From: Convolutriloba macropyga | Taxonomy: Eukaryota | DNA: 64,000 nt | Assembly (NCBI RefSeq): GCF_964194025.1 | Contig: NC_134481.1 | Span: 7,688,001 to 7,752,000, forward strand | Direction: 5' to 3' | Part shown: piece after piece, positions 1-32,125 of the stretch | Position numbering within the stretch: the stretch's first letter is position 1 | Layout: each line of letters opens with the position of its first letter | Translations under genes and position numbers: made by a program | The notes under the pieces: model-generated | Databases searched by the model: none | Told to the model about the DNA's origin: nothing | The model's input: only the letters and a program-made list of their open reading frames with translations

Positions 1-299
1 TGCGTGCTACAACTTTGGAATGCTGATTAAAATGTCTCCTAAAAATTTGGAATGTTGATGGAAATGCTATTCAAATACGATGGTTTTCGATGTAATTTTG
101 CGATTCGAACGTTTACTTTTGTTAACCATTCTAGTTTCACTCAGATTCCAATCTTAGTTTACATTGGTTTTTCACTGACTAACATTTTTTTTTCTTATTT
201 TTGAAGGCTGTAAAGGACTCCTCACCCTCTTTAACTATCAATTATGAAGGACAATTTACCATAGGGGAGACAGAGTTACATACAGAAACAGTAGCCTAC

Positions 300-435
300 C
301 TTTGAGTCGTTTGGCTAATTCGACAGTGAATAGAATGTTTGCTAGTTTGCTCTGTCCGTATGCTTTCCAAGGCATGTACTCTCTGTCCAAGTGGATGTCA
401 TCAAAGTGGATCTGGGCTGTATCTCGAATGCCAGC
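300..435 (-). CDS. Retinol dehydrogenase-like SDR (RDH11-14 group), internal exon carrying the catalytic YxxxK motif; gene continues beyond the left edge of the window
   Basis: Manual translation between cgcag| acceptor (436) and |gtaggc donor (299): AGIRDTAQIHFDDIHLDREYMPWKAYGQSKLANILFTVELAKRLK; phase 0 start matches the phase 0 end of exon 14590-14930. Not in the ORF track in this frame. Confidence 0.92.
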
Positions 436-1302
436 CTGCGAAAAAGAGGTGAAATAAATAACAGAGCAACAAAACGGAGTGCTGAAATCGATTTAACACT
501 AAAGACCTCTCTTTGTGTCCCAGTTTCATACATCCGATTAGTCAAGTAGTCAGAATAACCGACAAGATGGCTCGATCAGAAAAATTAATTTAAAAAATTC
601 CATCACTGATGTCCGAATCCGAATTTCCTAGATGTCCGAGTCCCGTAACCCCAACTTTTACAATATTTTTGGGCAAATTCTATTTTGAGCAAACATTGTG
701 AACTCCAAGAAGAGTGGAGTCATTTGAGAAGTGTCACCCAATGCCAGGGGACCATCGTTTTTTGTAAATACTGTCTCACCCAACGAGCGGGGAGAACATA
801 AATAATTTTCCAGAGTTCAATGAAGATTGAAATGAGAAGAATTCTGAAATTTAAGGAGAACAGGACTGATGTTATAGAGAGCGATTGAGAAGAATGAAGA
901 ATTCTTCAACAAAACAAACACTCCCTTATTTGAACTTTTAATGAGCAAAAACTTTTGATTCCGAATCAAAGTTTGATAATAAAGATTTGTTTTAATTTAA
1001 CATTTCAAGTTTCTATAAATTATTTATTTCTTTTAAAAAAAATTTCCTGGATTGTTTTAATAAGAAACGGACAAAACATTAACTGAGAGACAAGACAAGC
1101 TATGGTTCAACGACTTTGCTTATATCGTGGTTTTATATCATTCCCTGCAATTTGCACAAGAGTAATACATTTGACTCACTTCTTTGAACCATATTGCTCT
1201 GACCAGAGTTCCTGGCGAGACGAAGTAACAAAGGAGAAAACTTTTTTGTTAAGTTAGTTTTGAATGATCGGTATATTTCTCGTAAAACTTGTGATTGCCA
1301 TC

Positions 1303-4266
1303 AACAAGGAGGCTCGGTAATGTGCGTCCGCACATAATGTTCCGACCCCGCTTATCCACAAGTTTGGCTGCATTGTTTGAACTACACTGCCTATTAAGGT
1401 TGTTTCTGTTGATAACTTGATAGGAATTCAAAATTTTTTATTGTCTACCAAATTGTCTACTAAAAAATCTCACATATTGGGATTAAAAATAGTTGACGCA
1501 TGAATAAAAAAATTGTTTCCAACTCAAAAAATTTAGTAAAGTAAATGATGCATATAATGTAAATAAAGCAACGTTAGTGGGCCGATGAAATCTGCCAATA
1601 TTAAGACTACAAGGAAAGACGAACAAAAAATCAAATGCCAACAAACACTTACAGTCAAAATTCAATGTCTATTTCTTGAAAGAAAATTACACAATAACTA
1701 AGTCAAAATAGCGTCAACTGAACCTAAACTAAACAAATTAAAACGTACTTCACTAGAAAAAAACATGGGACCAGTCCTTAATGAGACTCGGTAACAAGTA
1801 AACAGAAAGAACAGAAAGAACAAAAAAAAATACGTCTGTTTTCTTGAAAAGAATTGCACATTAAAAACAATGGGAAATCAATGGAAACAGGTTCATTTTC
1901 ATTCATACCTCAATTTGAAGACATTAAGACCTGTCATTATCCAGATTATGTCGTACGTCTACAAAAACAAACGACGAAGTCAGACGAAAAACAAAACTTT
2001 CATTAAATTTTGCAAGAAAACCGTAACCCATGTCCCAACCGTAAAAACCATAATCTATTCCGTAAAAAGGTATAATCAAAGGCGCCTTCTTTGAACACCA
2101 ATAATGAGACATCTGATCTATGAATAAAGAGACTAGGTAACAAGTATTAAAAATGATTTTAAATTGAAAACTTAATAAGAGATTTGTATTTTTCGAGAAA
2201 AATTCACAAACAAAAAATTAGCTTGTAAAGGAAATCACTAAATAGGTTCTTTTAGTTCTCAAACGAAAACCAATGAGATCTCTCATTATTCAGAATGTGT
2301 CATACGTCTACAAAAAGAACAAAAAATGAACAAAAATCAAAAGCTAAATCAAACTTTTGTGAAAAAAACCGTCATCGAAGCCGTTAAAGCAATGCACGAT
2401 AAAACCCTTAGATATATTCAATTCTGCCTTTCTTCAGCAACAATTATTTGATATGCGACCTGTAAATAATGAGACTAGGTAGCAAATAGACAATAACGAA
2501 CAGCAAAGTGCAAATTTTAAAAAATCTAATTTTTTGTCATGAAAAACTAAAACTATTAACTGAAAACACTGAACAGGTTCCCTTTTTCATCCGAGAAAGC
2601 CCTTAAGACCTGCAATTGTCCCGAATTTATCAATTATCCCGAAATCAAAAATTTAATTATTCTCTCGCGAAAAACCAGGATTGAATCCGTTAAAACAAGA
2701 AGCAACGCACTGAAAACCATAGACAAATTCCAATTTGCTTATCTTCAACACCAATAATTTCCTATGCGACCTGCAATTAATGACACTAGGTGACAAGTAG
2801 ACAGCAAAGTTAAAAATGTCCTATATTTTAAAATATTTGAGTTCGAAGTCATGAAAAAATTAAGCGATCGACTGAAATCAGTAAATAGATTCTTTTTTTG
2901 ATCCATAGGAATCCACGACCTGCAGCCATCCAGAATTTGTCAAACAACAACAAAAAGAACGACAAATAAACATGAAAATAAAACGAAATTCCATTAAATT
3001 CTGATAGAAGACGGTTTCAAAACATTTAAAACCATAAACTATTCAATGAAAAACCGATGAGTTCAATTGTACCTTCTTTTGAAATACCAGTCAAATGATA
3101 TCTGACCTGTCAATTATGTGACAAGACAAGAAAACGAACCTCAATGATGCGAAAAGATCTGAAAAACAAAAAAAAACATTGTGAAAACTCGTAGTATCGA
3201 GGCAGAAAAACCAATACTTCAAACGTAAAACCGCATTGAAAGAACAAATTTTAGTCCATTAAAAAGGCAATGTGATATGTCTTCGCTGACCTCAGGCAAC
3301 AAGTTGACCAAAAATGAGAAAAAAAGTCAAACACCCAGTGTTCATAGTGAAAATATATATTTCTAAGTCAAAACGAAAATAGGCTTTAAACTTAAAAGTA
3401 GATAGGTTTCTTGAGACTAATTAGAAAGCCAATTGGACCTGTTATTAATATGACTGGATTTGAATTGTTCTCTTCTGTAATTTAGCCAAAAATCAAAACA
3501 GACAAAAATAATTTTAAAAAAAGCATCGACAAATTAAAACAGCGATTAAACCAAATCCACCTTCCTATTGCCCTTGGTTAATAATAAAAAACTGTTCCAA
3601 ATATTATGGATATGGATAATGCGACTAAAAAACTCCATATATCAAAAAAAAGATGTACTTTGCATAATTATCGAGTTAAACTTTCAAAAAAAACCTGCAA
3701 AATTTTAATTCAAGAACATTTGCAAAGTTTCTACAAAAACCACCATCCTTCTTTGCAGTAACAAAGATGATGTCAGTAGTTTTTAGGTGTTATTCTGGCA
3801 AATTTAAACAAAGATGATTGAAGAGCTTATGTCGTTTAATTTTTGATGCAAAAAGGCTGAATACTGAAAAAAAATTCTAGAAAAAAATTTAAAACTATAG
3901 CTATCAACTATAATCAGTGAATTGGTTCCCTTTTTCTTCCAAAGGAAACCAATAACATCTGCAATTATCCCGAATTTATCAATCGTCCCGAAATCAAAAA
4001 TTTAATTAATCTCTTGCAAAAAAAACTGGTATTGAAGCCGTTAAAACAATAAGCAACGCACTAAAAACCAAAATTATAGCCAAAAAATTGGATGAAACAG
4101 TTCAAGTTCAAAAGCACTTTGCTGTTGATCATGGTAAAACCAACAACACTATCGTTACATATTTGTTAAGCAAATTGGCAAAAAATGCTTTAAAACACGC
4201 AAATGTGAACAGTAACAACGAAAATCCGTCAAATGTTCAAAATTTTAAACTTCGATAACTCCCTGA
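1303..4266 (-). mobile_element. Helentron/DINE-like non-autonomous element, copy A (one end missing)
   Basis: Begins aacaaggaggctcggtaatgtgcgtccgcacataatgttccgaccccgc (hairpin plus subterminal IR) as at 17431 and 39038; shares internal ~330 bp subrepeats; similarity to copy B is lost near 4266. Confidence 0.6.
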
Positions 4267-6559: not shown

Positions 6560-7300
6560 GATATCAAAGATGTCGAAAAATGTGAACAATCTTTTAAAAA
6601 AGCCAGAAACCATAATCCAAAATATTAGGATTATGGACGGCCAGCCTGGGGTCAACAATACCTCACCATCACTTTCAGTCTATTATAATTTTGAAGAACC
6701 AGCTCTCCATTCAATTAATTCTTCTCTTAGGAATTCTATCAACTGAGCGCTTCAAATTTCGAAAATCCAAAAGTGACAGGTTTTTTCTGCAGGGCATTGA
6801 ACATGGGCTTATAATACTATTTGAGGGAAGCAATTGCTTTTACAGACAAGCCACAAAACTGCTTGATATTATCCTAAAGATTGAACAACGGGCAAATATT
6901 GAACAGTACATAAGGGCACTCTAGAGACGACACAGAAGAACAAACAATCCAATCGAAGAGGGTAACTAAAGTTTAAAAAACTTGTATGACTAGCCTGCTA
7001 TAGACGTTCAATTTGACTTTCACAATCTAGAATAAAATTTAATTTTCAGTTATCTAAAATTGTTTCTCACGTCAGTTGACGCGACTTCAGCATTTATTAG
7101 AAATCACCCCAGACAAGATATCACGTTGGAAATTCAATTACCAACGAAATGGCACAATAAATTCAGTAAAACTTCCGTGCAAAAACATTGTAAAGAATCT
7201 AATAAGGAACAGAAGTTTGCGCTGATTAAAAAATGTGGGCCGACTTTGACTAAGAATGCCAAAAAGAATTCACAAAATAATGATTGCAATCACCCATTAT
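6560..7300 (+). mobile_element. Possible highly decayed LINE RT C-terminal fragment
   Basis: gattatggacggccagcctggggt (~6629) encodes DYGRPAWG, resembling the LDYxxPxW motif of LINE ORF2; remainder frameshifted. Confidence 0.3.
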
Positions 7301-7576
7301 AAAACATAAGCCGATCAACGTCAGACAAATTCTCAAAATGAAATTTTCCACCTTGAAAAATACCCATTGCTTGGAAATTTAAGAGCTGGACTATTAGGGT
7401 CATGAAAAAGTTAGTAATTAATTATGACTACTGATTTGAGAAACGTATTTTTCTAGTTTCCGGTCCCAGCCCAACCACATAAAATCATTGATAAAACACA
7501 AGATATAAAATAGCAAAATCTCTTTCAAACAATAATTTTATCCCAACAAATAGCACCCTCACAACTCATACATTAT

Positions 7577-9249
7577 TCACATTTGTTTGATTGAAGTTAT
7601 TTCAATTGTTCCATCTTCCGACACTTCCTCTTGATTATTTTTCTCCAATATAAAGTTGAATACTTCAAACGCATACATCCCAATGACAATAAATATGAAG
7701 CAAAACGACCCAGCTCCCGAAACCACGCATGCTAGAATTGATGGTCCAGGGCAGAAGAAACAAAACCCCCAACCAATTCCAAATAAAAGTGATCCGGATA
7801 TCAATCTCCAATCCAGTGCGTCTTTGCAGGGAAGTTGGTATTCTTCAGTTAGCAATGGTTTGTCCTTTCGCTTTCTCAAAATGAGCTGAAAAGTTACCAG
7901 GTTGAAAGTAACAGCCGATATCAAAACCATCAGAAGAGTGATGTCCCAGTTTTTGTCAAAAGCTAAAAAGTTTCTGACTTTGCTCGGTCGGGTCATCCCC
8001 GATAACGACAAACCGACTCCGAAAACAATGCCCAGTATGTACTTGATAAAATAATGTCTGAGATCTGCAGAAAGTTGTTCAACTCCGTTGATAGCGAAAC
8101 TGACAATCCATAAGCAAATCATGAATATGAGGAGTATCCCGAGCATGATTCCAGCGACGGTTTCTGAAGCCTCCCGATCGAAGGATTCTCGTAAATCTTC
8201 AAGAAAGTCAATTTTGAAGAAACCTGAAACGGACATTGCGAAGTAAAATATAATCTCAGCTTCACAGAATTGTGTTTTCTCTAGGAAAGATCTCCATGCC
8301 CAGTCATGTTCACAATTATGCATTTTATTCGCCACTTACCATCAATTCATAGCAAAAATTGATCTTTTCAACAACCCCCCCCCCCCCCCCCCCCCCTGTT
8401 GCCAGGTAGAAAATTTCCCCCTTTCTGTGTTGTACTTCGACGACAATGTTCTTGGCCTAAAGTTTAGACAGCATTATACCAGTTTCTGCGAGACCACTGT
8501 TCACGGTCATGTTTCTCAATTGCTGTGGGATGTAATGCGGAATCGCCTGTCGGTTATCTTGCAGGTTGGATTTTTTTCAATTTATATTCTAATTCGACTC
8601 AAAGCATTAGCATTGCTTAATTTATTCTATTGCGTTTACCATACCATTCAAATGCGTGGAATTTTAATACTCGTTTATGATTGGTTAGTAAATCGTCCGT
8701 TGAAATTCTATTCAAGAATTGCCCAATAGGGTAAAATTGTTGACAAGATCCTTAAATTTATACTATATAGAACAGGTCAATCTTACCTGTATGTCTCAGG
8801 ATATTTGCAGTTGCTAGAGCTAGTCCAAAGAAACATCCAACAGCAACGAACGACCGCTTCGAGAACCTTGCCAATCCCGAGACACCATGTCCACTTGTGC
8901 ACCCGTTGCCCAATCGAGTTCCAAACCCAACTAGGAGTCCTCCGAACAAAAGCCGGAACGCATTCGGGGCCTCGGAATCCGCATCGTACAACTCAATGTC
9001 TTCAGATCCGATTGTCAATTCCCGACCTCCGAAGATTAAATACGCAACCAATATTGACGAAATGAGGCCACAGATATAAGTCAATTTCCAGAAAAACCCA
9101 GATTTAATTCGAAGCATTAGGGACACAGAAAGGTATCCACTAAGCCCCGTAAGATGTCCGTAAAGAAAGAGATTCAAAGTCGAGCTGATGCCAATTAAAA
9201 GACCTCCCGCTAAACCACGGGCTACATCCACACCATCAAAATTTACCAT
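7577..9249 (-). CDS. YeeE/YedE-family (TsuA/PmpAB-like) sulfur/thiosulfate transporter, two exons join(9249..8787, 8223..7577), ~369 aa
   Basis: Exon 1 has GGLLIG...GLSG and GGLLVGFGTRLGNGCTSGHGVSGLARFSKRS; exon 2 has FGVGLSLSGMTRPSKVRNFL..WD and DWRLISGSLLFGIGWGFCFFCPGP, the two hallmark halves of YeeE/YedE proteins. Phase-1 intron 8786..8224 (GTAAGA...tttcAG) joins them in frame (..LRHT-G-FFKID..). Confidence 0.93.
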
Positions 9250-9345
9250 TATACACTCACCTAATTACAATATTATTTGAAGTAATTTTAACTTGTCACA
9301 AAGCGGTTAAACTACTTTTACCAGCAGCTCAAAATATTAGCAAAG

Positions 9346-9351
9346 TTTATA
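9346..9351 (-). promoter_or_regulatory. Putative TATA box for the YeeE/YedE gene
   Basis: TATAAA on the minus strand ~97 bp upstream of the ATG at 9249; AT-rich background makes this weak. Confidence 0.25.
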
Positions 9352-11643
9352 CTTAGACGTACGGGAATAGCAAGATTGTTATATTTGTAGAAGGTTATTG
9401 ATTATTTTGAACATACTTCAGTAACTCTCAAATGATTAATGGTCCAAAATTAAACAAATTTTAAAAATAATAAGCACATGACTGCTGGAACGCGATAGTA
9501 ATTGTTATTTTAAAAACTTCAAGAATATTATGAAAAAATTGACTAAGGCGCAAAATTATGGATAAAAAATTATGTTCATAAGGACATTTATGAGATAGAT
9601 ATACAGACTAATGTACTAATAAAGTACGTGCAGCTTACAGAGGTCACAAAATCTTAATTTAAAATTATTGCTAATGGTACATGAAATAAAGGGGAAAAAT
9701 AATAAAACAAATTTATGCAGATAAAATGCAGCAAAACGAAGGCTCTGTTTTGAAAAACGGAGGAATTTCTCCGCAGAAAAGAACACTTTTTGCATATTAA
9801 AGTGAAGGAAATACGTCAATCTAATAACAAAGCCATATGCAAAACACTTGCTGCTGATTGATGAAAAACTGCGCAAAAATTAATTAGCAGTGATGAAATA
9901 TACAATAATATGAAAAAAAAACAACACAAGTTGACGTAATTAGATCCTCCAAATTGAACCTCTTTTTGAACTTTTGCAGCATTGAAGCCATGATTTTGTG
10001 TTAAATCTAGATTAGGAAAACAGCGCGGAGTTATAGCAAAACTAAGACAACATGCCATGTAACTAATACACCTCGAAATAACTTCATCAAAGTAAAGCTG
10101 TCGTAACAAGATGCAAAATCTCTTAGAAAACTTTGAACGGCGAACTGAACGTCATTCCATTAAAAAAAATCAGTCAAAAAAGTTAAATCTTTCATGAAAA
10201 AAAGGCTTTCTTGAAAATATTTCAAATCATAAATTGATGAAATAGCTGAACTTTTTGAAAAATGCTAAATGAATCAAATTTTGAGGAAATAATACAGCCA
10301 AACTGTAGACAAGCTGGCATATAATTCGACAGTTTGATCTCACTCTTACAAAACAGAAAAGAGTTTTTTACGTTAGGCTAGGACTTGTTAGTCACCTGTG
10401 TTCCATTCTCTATTCTTTCTATATCTTCTACTGTCTTCAAATGTAAAGAGAATATCCTTGTAAAAATTGATTCCCGTAATTAACTTAAAGAAGCAAGCTC
10501 TAACCCAACATGGATCCAACTAAAAAGCAAAAAAAAAATCGTGAACTCTCCAAGCTAAAAAAAGAATCATGTGCTTGAAACCTGTGCAATAAAAAAACGA
10601 CAGAAATTAAAAAAACAAGACGGCTCGTGTGATTCTGTGCCTTGCACAGATTGTTCCAATATACGTCTCACATTTTAAAACTTTTTTGTTTGTAGAGGAA
10701 AAGCTCTTTTGATCATCAGTTTTGCTTTGCTCAGATTGAAAAAATTTTGCTGTATACCTTGAATACAACATTCATCACTATGTACACTGGAAACAAATAT
10801 TTTCAAAAAAACGTAACTTCAGAAAGTTTACCTTATCGAGAGCAATCAGTGACAAAGAAAATGCATCTTAAACGATCACAGACAATATTTTACTAAAAGA
10901 AATTACAGCGATCATTTTACACGATAAAAGATGCAAACAACTAATAGACTCAATTTTTTTCATCTGTTTTTTCTCTTTGAAAATACGCCCAAATGACTGT
11001 AGTAATTTTTAACAGTTAGTTACACTGAATATCCAGTTGAACTTTTTTTCTCAAAAATGTAACCGAATATCAAGAACTAATTTAAACAAAATCAGAAATG
11101 TTGTAGAAATGTTCATTGTCTAGTTTTGTCTTTTTTGGTAAGAACGCTGTTTGAAGTTACTTTCAAATAACTTCTCTTATCTTCGGAAAATTTCTAATTT
11201 CTAACTATTTGAATCGAACACAACAAAAACGTTTTCTCAACTTACTTAAACAAAATTCTTTTAAATTTACTTAAACAAAAAGTGGTAATAAGTTCAACGG
11301 GCGGTTGCTCTGTTGACAAAGATAACATGCTTCTCGGCTTTGTTCCCAAATGACTGTTCATTCTTGTTTTCTTGCTACAAAATCCCCATATGTAACTATT
11401 TCAGAATTTCGGACTCAAGTATTTGCTTTTGGCTATATTTTCTAGAAATTGATAAAAATTTTCAATACCTAAAAAAACAAATTTATCTGTTTTTTGTTAT
11501 TTAAAGTAGAGACCACGTTTCAGGGATCTTGTTGCTCCAGAAATAAAATTCCAACATGCCTGGTTTCACTGTAAAACTAAGGACCAAGGATACAGCAAAA
11601 CAACGCCAAGCGCCAGTAGTACTGGTACATTTGTATTTATGGC

Positions 11644-14237
11644 CTTAATGATCTCTTAAGATTACAGTAGTATTTTGACTGCAAATAACGAAGCCGAAAA
11701 CTAATAAAGAGAAAAATAATGTCATAATGGTCAGATGTAGAGTCAACATTTGGAATCAATTTGGAGGTAGATTGTAGTTGCAGATTTTACAATTTTAGAC
11801 TTCGATAACTGCATTTATATGTCGAGAGAATGAGCACTCAATCAATTTGGTAACAAAAATCCTTTTCGCTAATTTAGCATATTGGCGAGTCAGCCACAAC
11901 TTTTTTTGTCCATAAAATTTAGAGCAGCTAAACACAACACTTTTAGCAATGCATATCTGCATCTCACAATCGTACTTCCGCACCATCTTAGTATACCATA
12001 TAGTGAATTGAGCTTTAAAGTTTCCTCAGATCCAAAGCACTGATTTCAACATACCAAAAATTATTCATTCTTAAACATAGATGATTGACTCGCTACCATT
12101 TTCACTTTACATGATTTGAAAGAAATTTTGTTTCGTTGAAAACATATTTAAATTAATGTCGAAATTCAAAAAAAACACAAGACACTAATGTCGATAAAAT
12201 TGCTCCCCTAACGACCACCGTCTGGTGTGGCATCAGTTGAAAAGTTCTCTAGCAGGGGTCACCGGTTACGGGGCTTCAAAACTTTTATAAGAGGTAATTT
12301 TTTAAAAGAGCTTCAAAACTTTTTATAAGAACTTTTTATAAGGCTTCAAAACTTTTTATAAGTGCTTGAAGATCAATTTCAGTTCATTTTATATTTGCCT
12401 TCTGATAGTAAACTGCATCTGACTAAGTTAAGCCGCTGAAGCTTGTATTCTGAAGGCGAGCAACTTAGTGCGCAAACACTGCAAATACAAGAGTGACAAG
12501 GCCCTTGAAAAGTGGTCCGACAAAAAATGCATTAAAACAAACAGGATAAAAACAAAAATGCGAACTTTGTTTGAGACTAAGCAACAAACTTCAACAGACA
12601 CTATTAATTTTAGATATTTTAAGGAACGATAAATCTTCTCAGTAAGGTTGATTAAGTTTGTCAAATTAAAAAATTTCCCTAAGCATGTAATCCTTTGCAC
12701 ACTATCAATACAAAACATACCCGGAAGATTGCCAGAAAATAGCCGCCGTTGATTCCCATAACTCTATTGGGATTGAAAGAAAAGAAAAAATCGACAAATA
12801 TTGATTTTTGTATAAAAACATTTTTAAGTGCGATTTATTTTGATATCATTTCGTAATTGAAGATACTCCTGTCTCTCAGTGAGAGGCTACAGGGTCTAGT
12901 ATCAATACCAATAGGCATTATAGATAGTAACTAAAACTTAATGATCTCTTAAGATTACAGTAGTATTTTGACTGCAAATAACGAAGCCGAAAACTAATAA
13001 AGAGAAAAAATAATGTCATAATGGTCAGATGTAGAGTCAACATTTGGAATCAATTTGGAGGTAGATTGTAGTTGCAGATTTTACAATTTTAGACTTCGAT
13101 AACTGCATTTATATGTCGAGAGAATGAGCACTCAATCAATTTGGTAACAAAAATCCTTTTCGCTAATTTAGCATATTGGCGAGTCAGCCACAACTTTTTT
13201 TGTCCATAAAATTTAGAGCAGCTAAACACAACACTTTTAGCAATGCATATCTGCATCTCACAATCGTACTTCCGCACCATCTTAGTATACCATATAGTGA
13301 ATTGAGCTTTAAAGTTTCCTCAGATCCAAAGCACTGATTTCAACATACCAAAAATTATTCATTCTTAAACATAGATGATTGACTCGCTACCATTTTCACT
13401 TTACATGATTTGAAAGAAATTTTGTTTCGTTGAAAACATATTTAAATTAATGTCGAAATTCAAAAAAAAAACACAAGACACTAATGTCGATAAAATTGCT
13501 CCCCTAACGACCACCGTCTGGTGTGGCATCAGTTGAAAAGTTCTCTAGCAGGGGTCACCGGTTACGGGGCTTCAAAACTTTTATAAGAGGTAATTTTTTT
13601 AAAAGAGCTTCAAAACTTTTTATAAGAACTTTTTATAAGGCTTCAAAACTTTTTATAAGTGCTTGAAGATCAATTTCAGTTCATTTTATATTTGCCTTCT
13701 GATAGTAAACTGCATCTGACTAAGTTAAGCCGCTGAAGCTTGTATTCTGAAGGCGAGCAACTTAGTGCGCAAACACTGCAAATACAAGAGTGACAAGGCC
13801 CTTGAAAAGTGGTCCGACAAAAAATGCATTAAAACAAACAGGATAAAAACAAAAATGCGAACTTTGTTTGAGACTAAGCAACAAACTTCAACAGACACTA
13901 TTAATTTTAGATATTTTAAGGAACGATAAATCTTCTCAGTAAGGTTGATTAAGTTTGTCAAATTAAAAAATTTCCCTAAGCATGTAATCCTTTGCACACT
14001 ATCAATACAAAACATACCCGGAAGATTGCCAGAAAATAGCCGCCGTTGATTCCCATAACTCTATTGGGATTGAAAGAAAAGAAAAAATCGACAAATATGG
14101 ATTTTTGTATAAAAACATTTTTAAGTGCGATTTCTTTTGATATCATTTCGTAATTGAAGATACTCCTGTCTCTCAGTGAGAGGCTACAGGGTCTAGTATC
14201 AATACCAATAGGCATTATAGATAGTAACTAAAACTTA
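11644..14237. repeat. Near-perfect tandem duplication, ~1.29 kb unit (11644-12936 and 12937-14233)
   Basis: Identical spurious ORFs at 11795/13089 and 12428/13725; copies differ only in homopolymer lengths and a couple of substitutions; CTTA microhomology at the junctions. Confidence 0.95.
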
Positions 14238-14589
14238 TGAGAACAAAGTTCAAGTACCGGGCATCTAAAAATGGACTTTAAGGGATTATCCCGTTTCTAT
14301 TTCTGACTTTTGATTTTTTATACTGACTCCCATTTTGAATTGCTTTGCTGAGCAGCTGCTGTTTAAAAGGACTTTGAGCAGAATGACAGAAGAGTGAAAC
14401 TAGCCTAGAGAAGTCAAAAAGATTTCACGCAAAATGTCGAAAAAGCGGCAAAATGGGTAAAGCGAAAAAAAGTTCGACGAAGTAAAAAAAATAGGAGCGC
14501 TATAATTGCCGGCTGAGAAGATGAGGGCGGCTATTAAAAACTTAAATCTCAAAAAACTCGGAGAAGCAAAACCAATTGCTACCACTAAC

Positions 14590-14930
14590 TTTGGATGAAA
14601 CATTAACAATGCGACTCGGCTGGGACGCCTTGATAAGGTCTAAGAGTAGAGTAGTCAGTAGGAAGTGTCCGAGGTGGTTGACTCCCAACTGGTACTCGAA
14701 ACCATCTAGGGTGGATCCCTTCGGACATGCCATCACTCCTGCATTGTTCACTAGAATGTCACATCTACTCTCCTCACTCAGGAACTGGTCACAGAAACCA
14801 CGCACAGATCCGAGACTTGCCAGGTCTAGCTGCATTACGGATATGTTGCTGTTTTTGGTGGCTTTGATTATTCTATTAGCAGCATCTTGTCCTGCTTGGA
14901 CGTTGCGACAAGCTAGGATTACTCGTGCAC
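14590..14930 (-). CDS. Retinol dehydrogenase-like SDR, internal exon
   Basis: ttgcag| acceptor, |gttagt donor; (G)ARVILACRN...MQLDLASLGSVRGFC...DILVNNAGVM...GVNHLGHFLLT...RIVNVSSK, typical of RDH11-14/WWOX-like SDRs. Confidence 0.95.
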
Positions 14931-15368
14931 CTGCAACACAACAAAGTTACCGATATATCAACCTTCTGGTGGAACATTACAGCACTTTCCGTGGAGCAAT
15001 TACACCAAAGCAATCCCACGTTTTAGGCTTGAATGTAATGATTATGTTTAGACAAGGCGCAAGAACGTTGTCAAATTGGGTAAGTAGCATGCAAGAAAAT
15101 TTAGATTTCATGACAACGAATAACTGCCTACCGTAAAGGCAAATATATACGAAAACATAAAACGTTCCGGCACGGTAATAAAATTTTCGTTTCTGAATTG
15201 GAGTGCAATTTCTTTCTTAGAGCATTCACGGAAAGATGAGGTCTATCGATATCATTTACTGGTTGACAAAATCGAATTTGATCACTGCCACAAAACATTT
15301 TTTTAAAAAAACATTTTTTTTAAAAAACATTTTTTTAAAAAATGCAAGTTAAGTCTTTGCAGACCTAC

Positions 15369-15509
15369 CTCTCCTCGCAAAATCCTTAGCAGTCTCGAAT
15401 CCGATTCCACAATTGCCACCTGTGACCAGGGTGGTCTTTCCAACCAGACTGGCTCTAGAGTGACACACCCCACCCAGGAAGTACCGCTTGGCGATTGCTA
15501 TCCCCGTCA
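15369..15509 (-). CDS. Retinol dehydrogenase-like SDR, N-terminal exon with Rossmann TGxxxGIG motif
   Basis: tttag| acceptor and |gtaggt donor; TGIAIAKRYFLGGVCHSRASLVGKTTLVTGGNCGIGFETAKDFARRG; phase 1 end matches the next exon. Confidence 0.92.
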
Positions 15510-15670
15510 CTAAACATTACATTATGCTACATAACGGGTTCTAACTCCCATTCCAGTAACTTACTTCTAGAACCGATTCAACATCAAAAATGCAGAACGC
15601 TGCTCGCTACAAAATGATATCTTCTAATTAATCGGAACTATTTCTGATTGTCGTTTCTGGCTTAGCAGTT

Positions 15671-31925: not shown

Positions 31926-32125
31926 NNNNNNNNNNNNNNNNNNNNNNNNNNNNNNNNNNNNNNNNNNNNNNNNNNNNNNNNNNNNNNNNNNNNNNNNNNN
32001 NNNNNNNNNNNNNNNNNNNNNNNNNNNNNNNNNNNNNNNNNNNNNNNNNNNNNNNNNNNNNNNNNNNNNNNNNNNNNNNNNNNNNNNNNNNNNNNNNNNN
32101 NNNNNNNNNNNNNNNNNNNNNNNNN
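31926..32125. other. Assembly gap (200 N)
   Basis: Run of N; round length suggests a scaffolding gap of unknown true size. Confidence 0.99.

Follow-up and report, generated by a model that had tools for sequence, protein, structure and literature searches.

Gene structure at the locus

The stretch of DNA analysed here (the window) comprises 64,000 nucleotides of the genome of the acoel Convolutriloba macropyga, positions 7,688,001 to 7,752,000 of the forward strand of contig NC_134481.1 (assembly GCF_964194025.1), and contains on its minus strand a two-exon gene for a membrane protein of the YeeE/YedE family. Coordinates are those of the window unless another locus is named. An initial annotation, made from the letters of the window, had proposed that two open reading frames (ORFs) at this place splice in frame into a protein of about 369 residues with both YeeE/YedE half-motifs, and this proved correct. 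The two minus-strand ORFs lie at 8758-9249 (163 amino acids) and 7577-8335 (252 amino acids). Joining 9249-8787 to 8223-7577 gives 463+647 = 1110 nt, in frame, that encode 369 residues followed by TGA; the joint removes a 563-nt GT-AG intron with the donor GTAAGA after base 8787 and the acceptor TTTCAG before base 8223. The spliced product is 100% identical over 369 amino acids to the RefSeq protein XP_075261795.1 (P0239), the “uncharacterized protein LOC142353439” of C. macropyga, and NCBI’s gene model therefore has the identical splice. The predicted joint rests on the sequence and on that model.

Exon 1 (8787-9249, minus strand) begins with the ATG at 9249-9247, holds codons 1-154 and the first base of codon 155, and encodes the entire N-terminal half, a PmpB/YedE1-like four-helix unit (residues 3-155). 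Within this half, the GNGCTSGHG motif (residues 114-122; 8884-8910, minus strand) carries the invariant Cys117 (8899-8901) and is located at a helix-break-helix (97-113 / 118-127) in the AlphaFold2 model of the protein. The spliceosomal intron (8224-8786, minus strand; 563 nt, phase 1, GT..AG) is placed exactly at the boundary between N-half and linker, as drawn by the hidden Markov model (HMM) of the half, and contains a poly-G run that appears as poly-C on the plus strand at about 8378-8397. Exon 2 (7577-8223, minus strand) runs from the remainder of codon 155 to residue 369 and the TGA at 7579-7577, and encodes a linker with a central transmembrane helix and the C-terminal PmpA/YedE2-like half (DUF6691, residues 209-354). 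The linker itself covers residues 156-208 (8063-8221, minus strand), and its hydrophobic central helix is modelled at 175-200. The second motif, GWGFCFFCPGP (residues 305-315; 7742-7774, minus strand), carries Cys312 (7751-7753) and an extra Cys309, and is again located at a helix-break-helix of the model (293-309 / 313-322).

Protein family and fold

Both exons match Pfam families above the cut-off of 27 bits, exon 1 to PF04143 Sulf_transp (E 1.5e-10, 41.6 bits) and exon 2 to PF20398 DUF6691 (E 1e-31, 110.6 bits). HMMs made from bacterial halves score 140.7 bits for the N-half over residues 3-155 and 146.2 bits for the C-half over 209-354. The linker between them has 53 residues and a maximum 19-residue hydropathy of 2.9; none of the 214 fused homologues has a linker shorter than 29 residues, and 178 of them show a hydrophobic stretch. 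Around the first cysteine, 68 fused homologues show no variation at G116, C117, T118, G120 and H121, while Cys312 is conserved in at least 90% of them and is matched in bacterial C-halves by an invariant cysteine, Cys101, in the same motif. By sequence, then, the protein is of the fused PmpB-PmpA (YedE1-YedE2) type, with N-half, central linker helix and C-half in one chain.

The AlphaFold2 model has a predicted local distance difference test score (pLDDT) of 92.3 and a predicted template modelling score (pTM) of 0.90. Against solved structures, Foldseek gave YeeE/TsuA as the only specific matches (8J4C, 8K1R, 6LEP and 6LEO; probability 1.0, TM score 0.54-0.62), and VIA-align placed the model on the same four structures with Z of 22.9-24.2 over 272-300 residues, the next fold reaching 6.7. 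A sequence search of the PDB with phmmer gave no match at E up to 1, so the comparison of folds was needed instead. The model predicts a nine-helix membrane protein with the YeeE fold, in which each half gives a re-entrant helix pair with a conserved cysteine. The resemblance to YeeE/TsuA (Spirochaeta thermophila, E. coli) takes in the whole fold over about 270-300 residues (Z 23-24), the nine-helix layout and the two cysteine-bearing re-entrant hairpins. Together, the Pfam matches and the YeeE fold of the model bear out the proposal of an intact, intron-bearing gene of the YeeE/YedE family.

By sequence the protein is not a thiosulfate importer of the TsuA type: the TsuA model of NCBIfam (NF052577) scores 18.4 bits against a cut-off of 400 and no PDB sequence matches. 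The best NCBIfam match is to YedE/FdhT, a membrane protein of selenium metabolism from the same superfamily, at 28.8 bits against a cut-off of 350 and over residues 93-276. Both scores are far under the equivalog cut-offs. An Atlas structural comparison with YedE/FdhT gave TM scores of 0.64-0.67; it was made with the top chlorophyte match, not with the acoel model.

Half by half, the closest characterised relatives are the bacterial PmpB/PmpA (YedE1/YedE2) proteins, known from Serratia, Cupriavidus pinatubonensis and Sinorhizobium meliloti; identity of the halves to bacterial proteins is 40-48%. The essential cysteine of each half is kept in the same motif, with GNGCTSGHG corresponding to the surroundings of YedE1 Cys104 (PMC10812762). 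In bacteria the two halves are distinct proteins, each a four-helix chain of about 130-145 residues, whereas the acoel protein is one 369-residue chain with an extra central helix, and the operon partners of the bacterial pair are not applicable to the acoel gene. PmpB and PmpA have been described as the two halves of YeeE, with one cysteine each, matching Cys91 and Cys293 (PMC11582611). The equivalence of Cys117 and Cys312 to these two residues is taken from that description, not from a residue-by-residue superposition. TsuA, for its part, works with a TusA-like partner, YeeD/TsuB (PMC11073785).

Genomic setting of the gene

The locus lies at about 7.696 Mb on the 49-Mb C. macropyga chromosome OZ077312.1 (assembly GCA_964194025.3), where an RDH-like short-chain dehydrogenase (SDR) gene of the same orientation houses the YeeE-type gene in one of its introns, which is about 14 kb long. 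Upstream of the nested gene are the SDR exon with TGxxxGxG (near 15349-15510, minus strand) and an exon with the NNAG and VNVSS motifs (14542-14835, minus strand); the next SDR exon, with the catalytic motif YGQSK, follows downstream of it (256-390, minus strand). These same-strand exons on both sides confirm the metazoan host context that the initial annotation had described. The GC content of the coding sequence is 43%, against 31-33% in the flanks, and was judged host-like. Logan contigs from four sequencing runs link the gene to its flanks at even depth.

C. macropyga is a photosymbiotic acoel that was sequenced by the Aquatic Symbiosis Genomics project (PMC13650328). As the animal hosts algae and the sample was the whole organism (PMC13650328), DNA of a symbiont, of prey or of a bacterium might have been mis-joined to host DNA, or the gene might be a decaying insertion, an explanation that would also fit with RNA support not having been obtained. 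Against this stands, first, the position of the gene in a host SDR intron on a 49-Mb chromosome, and the gene is therefore not a contaminant. The same nesting recurs 146 kb away, a third locus lies on another chromosome, and an orthologue lies on a 61.6-Mb chromosome of Symsagittifera roscoffensis. The Logan contigs of several runs that join the gene to its flanks, the host-like GC content and the GT-AG introns likewise count against a mis-join, and a decaying insertion is at odds with the intact reading frames of four genes and with a ratio of nonsynonymous to synonymous divergence (dN/dS) of 0.079. In view of the host-intron nesting, the recurrent copies, the acoel orthologue and the intact, selected frames, we rejected contamination and consider a contaminant, chimeric or relic origin extremely improbable. 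The gene is a genuine, selectively maintained nuclear gene of C. macropyga (LOC142353439).

Acoel copies and selection

The second copy of the gene (P0001, locus L001) is 97.8% identical to the first, lies 146 kb away on the same chromosome in the same orientation, and is likewise nested inside an adh_short gene. Between these two copies dS is 0.12, dN 0.0095 and dN/dS 0.079, and because of this low ratio the gene is judged to be under purifying selection. Given the 146 kb between them and the dS of 0.12, we counted them as paralogues. The C. macropyga genome is highly heterozygous, at 3.65% (PMC13650328); with this heterozygosity and uneven depths among Logan contigs, some haplotype confusion between the close copies is conceivable. 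Variant letters in the runs at the locus mostly equal those of the paralogue L001.

The third C. macropyga copy (P0248, locus L002) lies on chromosome OZ077304.1, is 62.8% identical and has three exons, with an additional intron near residue 88, so that the gene spans about 9 kb. In P0248, serine replaces the nearly invariant cysteine of the C-half (FLSPGP instead of FFCPGP), and the cysteine three residues upstream is kept; by sequence, its activity may be changed or lost. The orthologue of S. roscoffensis is XP_063721754.1 (P0244, locus L003), on the 61.6-Mb chromosome mentioned above. All four acoel genes have in common the phase-1 intron after codon 154.

One further homologue (L006/L090) was found on the 138-kb contig ctg181738_102x_l (ENA ERZ25074608; L006, 10001-17273). 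Its first four exons are open for 280 residues without stops, and they are 52% identical to the acoel protein over exon 1 of the latter. It has the acoel-type linker, whose sequence (FLED..) is recognisably common only to the acoel genes and L006, and an intron at exactly codon 154.33, phase 1, as in the acoel genes; there are four introns in total, the first of which uses a GC donor inside the motif, GNGCT|SGHG. The last exon, with GWG..CPGP, was not found within 12 kb downstream; an interruption of the gene, or a final intron of great length, might explain this. The region downstream of L006 holds a Ty3/gypsy-type pol ORF of 1689 amino acids. In a tblastx comparison of the L006 contig with the acoel loci, the match was confined to the YeeE-type gene itself.

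In a maximum-likelihood (ML) tree of the concatenated halves, a clade supported at 100/99 unites the four acoel genes with L006. In it, L006 is the sister of the acoel genes, among which the S. roscoffensis gene branches off before a cluster (100/96) of the three from C. macropyga; this places their duplications within the Convolutriloba line. The sequences thereby show that the gene, with its phase-1 intron, predates the split between Convolutriloba and Symsagittifera.

Homologues and origin of the gene

Full-length searches returned fused proteins of about 335-400 residues at 30-41% identity, and the best identity outside the acoels was 41% among 1.84 billion representatives. For these searches the best 120-150 matches were listed, most of them without a taxon name, and unannotated animal genomes lay outside their scope. 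The named matches include ciliates (Blepharisma, with B. stoltei; Paramecium, with P. octaurelia; Protocruzia; and a probable Oxytricha entry), other protists (the gregarine Porospora, the ancyromonad Nutomonas longa and Picozoa), algae (the red algae Galdieria partita and Rhodosorus, the streptophyte Chlorokybus and two diatoms) and the fungus Umbelopsis. Animal proteins among the named listed matches come only from two acoels, in agreement with the earlier statement that the family is not standard in animals; no other animal or holozoan is among them, nameable EukProt and MMETSP entries included. Two exceptions to the eukaryotic labels are a 1.3-kb contig labelled as a Mycoplasma metagenome-assembled genome and a short-linker fused protein of Azospirillum, which falls outside the long-linker clade. 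P0121, the closest match in a word-indexed search, comes from a sludge metagenome, on a contig whose other genes are of eukaryotic type. The Atlas clusters that come closest in features have 100% eukaryotic members, and two of those listed are commonest in Ascomycota or Basidiomycota.

A homology search with exon 1 was dominated by bacterial half-size proteins, gave no further animal candidates and missed the exon-1 ORF of L006. The top short exon-1 matches (P0400, P0401 and P0403) were set aside, being N-terminal pieces of fused proteins of the protist type that lack the acoel linker.

If a bacterial pmpB-pmpA (yedE1-yedE2) pair had entered the acoel genome directly, its spacer having become the intron, then the intron might be expected where it is, exactly at the end of the N-half. 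Of 80 bacterial loci that we fetched, 79 have both genes on one strand with the N-half gene immediately 5' of the C-half gene and spacers of mostly 0-40 nt, and this gene order equals the order of the halves in the fusion. Per-half identity to bacteria (40-48%) is also as high as that to the eukaryotic fused proteins. However, exon 2 opens with the 53-residue linker, whose transmembrane helix is absent from bacterial pairs, and such a linker is found in 214 of 214 fused homologues. In the tree of concatenated halves, moreover, the 14 bacterial split pairs form a clade of their own, set off from a monophyletic group (100/99) of long-linker fused proteins that includes the acoels; the C-half tree has 113 of its 117 bacterial halves in a group without any fused protein. 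Because the fused clade is monophyletic with respect to the bacterial pairs, with the acoels inside it, and the C-half tree agrees, we rejected a direct bacterial origin despite the intron at the domain boundary, and regard it as very unlikely.

The trees place the gene instead as a descendant of an already-fused family, rather than of a bacterial gene pair, and every labelled member of the fused clade besides the acoels is a protist, an alga or a fungus. With these proteins the acoel gene product has in common the domain order Sulf_transp-DUF6691, a length of about 335-390 residues, the hydrophobic linker, the GNGCTSGHG and GWG..CPGP motifs and membership of the same clade (100/99). Unlike them, the acoel genes have an animal-type structure with a common phase-1 intron, and the acoel proteins, at only 30-41% identity to the others, sit on a long stem.

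How the fused gene came to be in acoels can be read in two ways. It may have been transferred from a microbial eukaryote into an ancestor of the acoels, a proposition that we consider evenly balanced. Alternatively, the fused gene may have been present in early eukaryotes or opisthokonts and been inherited vertically down to the acoels, with loss in other animals. The spread of the fused family over ciliates, a gregarine, an ancyromonad, Picozoa, red and streptophyte algae, diatoms and a fungus is consistent with such retention, as are the wholly eukaryotic Atlas clusters, two of those listed being commonest in Ascomycota or Basidiomycota. The ceiling of 41% identity among 1.84 billion representatives leaves no identifiable donor, and the four introns of the L006 homologue suggest long residence in intron-rich genomes. 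In an approximately unbiased (AU) test, grouping the acoels with the Umbelopsis-containing clade cost 18.9 log-likelihood units and was not rejected (p 0.275). Retention would, on the other hand, need many independent losses; the acoels are the only animals among the named matches, with no holozoan among the nameable EukProt and MMETSP entries; and the ML tree puts the acoels with protist lineages (94/90), away from the fungal clade. We hold vertical inheritance to be a serious possibility, if somewhat short of even. A supported nesting of the acoels inside one donor lineage, together with rejection of vertical descent, was not obtained. Recent transfer from a sampled alga or symbiont was rejected, as no match exceeds 41% even with MMETSP and EukProt sequences searched. 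The initial proposal of a gene either laterally acquired or anciently retained is, in sum, upheld as to an integrated, intron-bearing host gene; a direct bacterial source is contradicted, and transfer and retention are both candidate readings of its origin.

Predicted function

YedE1E2 of Cupriavidus and Sinorhizobium has been reported to give faster uptake of zero-valent sulfur and formation of glutathione persulfide (PMC10812762). Serine in place of either conserved cysteine of YedE1E2 abolishes this activity, and YedE2 C101S is inactive (PMC10812762). In Acinetobacter, the persulfide sensor BigR controls a yeeE-yedE-pdo2 operon (PMC7315123), and the bacterial split pair is often found with persulfide dioxygenase and BigR.

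By analogy with the YeeE/TsuA structures and with YedE1E2, Cys117 and Cys312 would line a narrow central passage of the acoel protein. Reduced inorganic sulfur, whether as thiosulfate or in sulfane or zero-valent form, would cross the membrane through this cysteine passage and then be handed to thiols or to persulfide-oxidising enzymes, which would couple the passage to persulfide or sulfite metabolism. On the same analogy, the putative cargo would be thiosulfate or sulfane sulfur. Two metagenomic relatives in the fused clade, P0216 (whose source name is sulfur dioxygenase) and P0374, have an extra C-terminal Lactamase_B domain, and the fused gene P0199 is adjoined by a Lactamase_B gene on its contig. 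Read as Rosetta-stone evidence, such Lactamase_B fusions and neighbours, of the persulfide dioxygenase type, give a hint of the function of the fused subfamily.

The same fold could instead serve another cargo, such as selenium species, sulfite or another small anion, or the protein could be a membrane sulfur-relay or redox protein. The best NCBIfam match is, after all, the selenium protein YedE/FdhT, if far under its cut-off. Authors also disagree on the cargo of the split pair, which has been called an “unknown form of sulfur” (PMC7315123), and the expression of PmpAB in Hyphomicrobium is unresponsive to thiosulfate (PMC11582611). Yet the closest characterised relatives of each half, YedE1E2, show an uptake of zero-valent sulfur that requires the same two cysteines (PMC10812762), and the Lactamase_B fusions and neighbours occur inside the fused clade itself. 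We therefore consider a different cargo or a relay role unlikely.

Taken together, the data are in our judgement probably best explained by a selected acoel nuclear gene for a fused protein of YeeE fold, with a putative passage for reduced sulfur, that descends from an already-fused family. Several observations weigh against this explanation. The papers that we found report no tested function for any eukaryotic member of the fused family, and the predicted substrate and direction carry over what is known of bacterial proteins, to which each half is about 40-48% identical. Relative to TsuA, the protein scores far below the NCBIfam cut-off, is only 12-15% identical and has no N-terminal counterpart of YeeE Cys22, its first cysteine being residue 60. 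On the side of expression, the four sequencing runs that contain the locus are genomic, with even depth across the intron and no joints, and a search restricted to RNA-Seq runs listed none, so that no transcript evidence was obtained. As to descent, most homologues in the tree have no taxon label, so that bacterial sequences may be present in the fused clade; the acoels branch from a long stem (0.61) without a resolved sister group, and the AU test did not reject the grouping with the Umbelopsis-containing clade.

To our knowledge, animals are not known to use membrane proteins of the YeeE/YedE type. Their handling of reduced sulfur is usually described in terms of mitochondrial sulfide oxidation and sulfate carriers. 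In the literature that we searched, no paper was found on a YeeE/YedE-type gene in acoels or any other animal; the gene is already annotated in RefSeq as an uncharacterized protein. The family and its fused architecture are in databases already. Photosymbiotic acoels have a conserved, selected gene family of YeeE type in up to three copies, a candidate for how these animals handle thiosulfate or sulfane sulfur and for any relation of this to symbiosis. The acoel gene would also offer an initial way into the function of the fused eukaryotic subfamily as a whole. As a case of gene transfer it is a candidate only.

A more specific scenario is that an ancestor of convolutid acoels captured the gene from a microbial eukaryote, for example from prey or an algal partner, and used it for uptake or transfer of reduced inorganic sulfur. 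We regard this combination as quite doubtful, and the role in sulfur exchange with sediment or a symbiont that the initial annotation offered is speculative. If it is true, acoels would have a route not reported from other animals, which might serve life in sulfide-rich sand or else the intracellular green algae, by supplying them with sulfur or by detoxification in their surroundings; the presence of three copies in C. macropyga would then reflect expansion for that role.

Further observations at the acoel loci

The two close C. macropyga copies differ unevenly along their length. Their introns (8224-8786 in the window) are 98.9% alike, with 6 mismatches over 542 aligned bases, whereas the exons are 96.1% and 97.1% alike and the flanks, at about 94%, are less alike than the intron. 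Identity between the window and L001 is patchy on a smaller scale too, with 100% at 8800-8899 and 92-93% at 8900-9099. The patchy identity and the conserved intron suggest gene-conversion tracts or a constrained intronic element. An Rfam scan of window positions 7000-10500, prompted by the unusually conserved intron, gave no match. One 2009-base Logan contig, corresponding to 7533-9559, is a mosaic of the letters of the two copies, window-like at 7568-7962 and 8788-9190 and paralogue-like at 8030-8305, 8547, 8648 and 9273-9340; it represents an allele altered by recombination or gene conversion, or else the two copies were merged in assembly.

About 7 kb upstream of the S. roscoffensis orthologue, at 449-2986 of L003, lie two adjoining intronless genes, one for an aldo-keto reductase and one for a MOCS3/MoeZ-like ThiF adenylyltransferase. 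The ThiF protein aligns full length to its model, the C-terminal sulfurtransferase part included. The presence of a sulfur-relay enzyme beside the S. roscoffensis transporter may be coincidence, because the MOCS3/MoeZ-like neighbour was not seen at the C. macropyga loci.

Elsewhere in the window, a 200-base run of N at 31926-32125 marks an assembly gap or a masked stretch. Inside the SDR intron, a unit of about 620 bp occurs twice in direct orientation, at 12084-12702 and 13378-13999, with a spacing of about 1.3 kb. Each contains an identical 96-residue ORF (12428-12718 and 13725-14015), and the paralogous locus L001 has one segment that matches the two units at 77%. Another segment, of about 250 bp, occurs once in the window (1055-1307) but is repeated in tandem eight times or more at L001 (15129-21318), with a period of about 850 bp; one of the two duplicated regions has thus undergone an expansion like that of a satellite.

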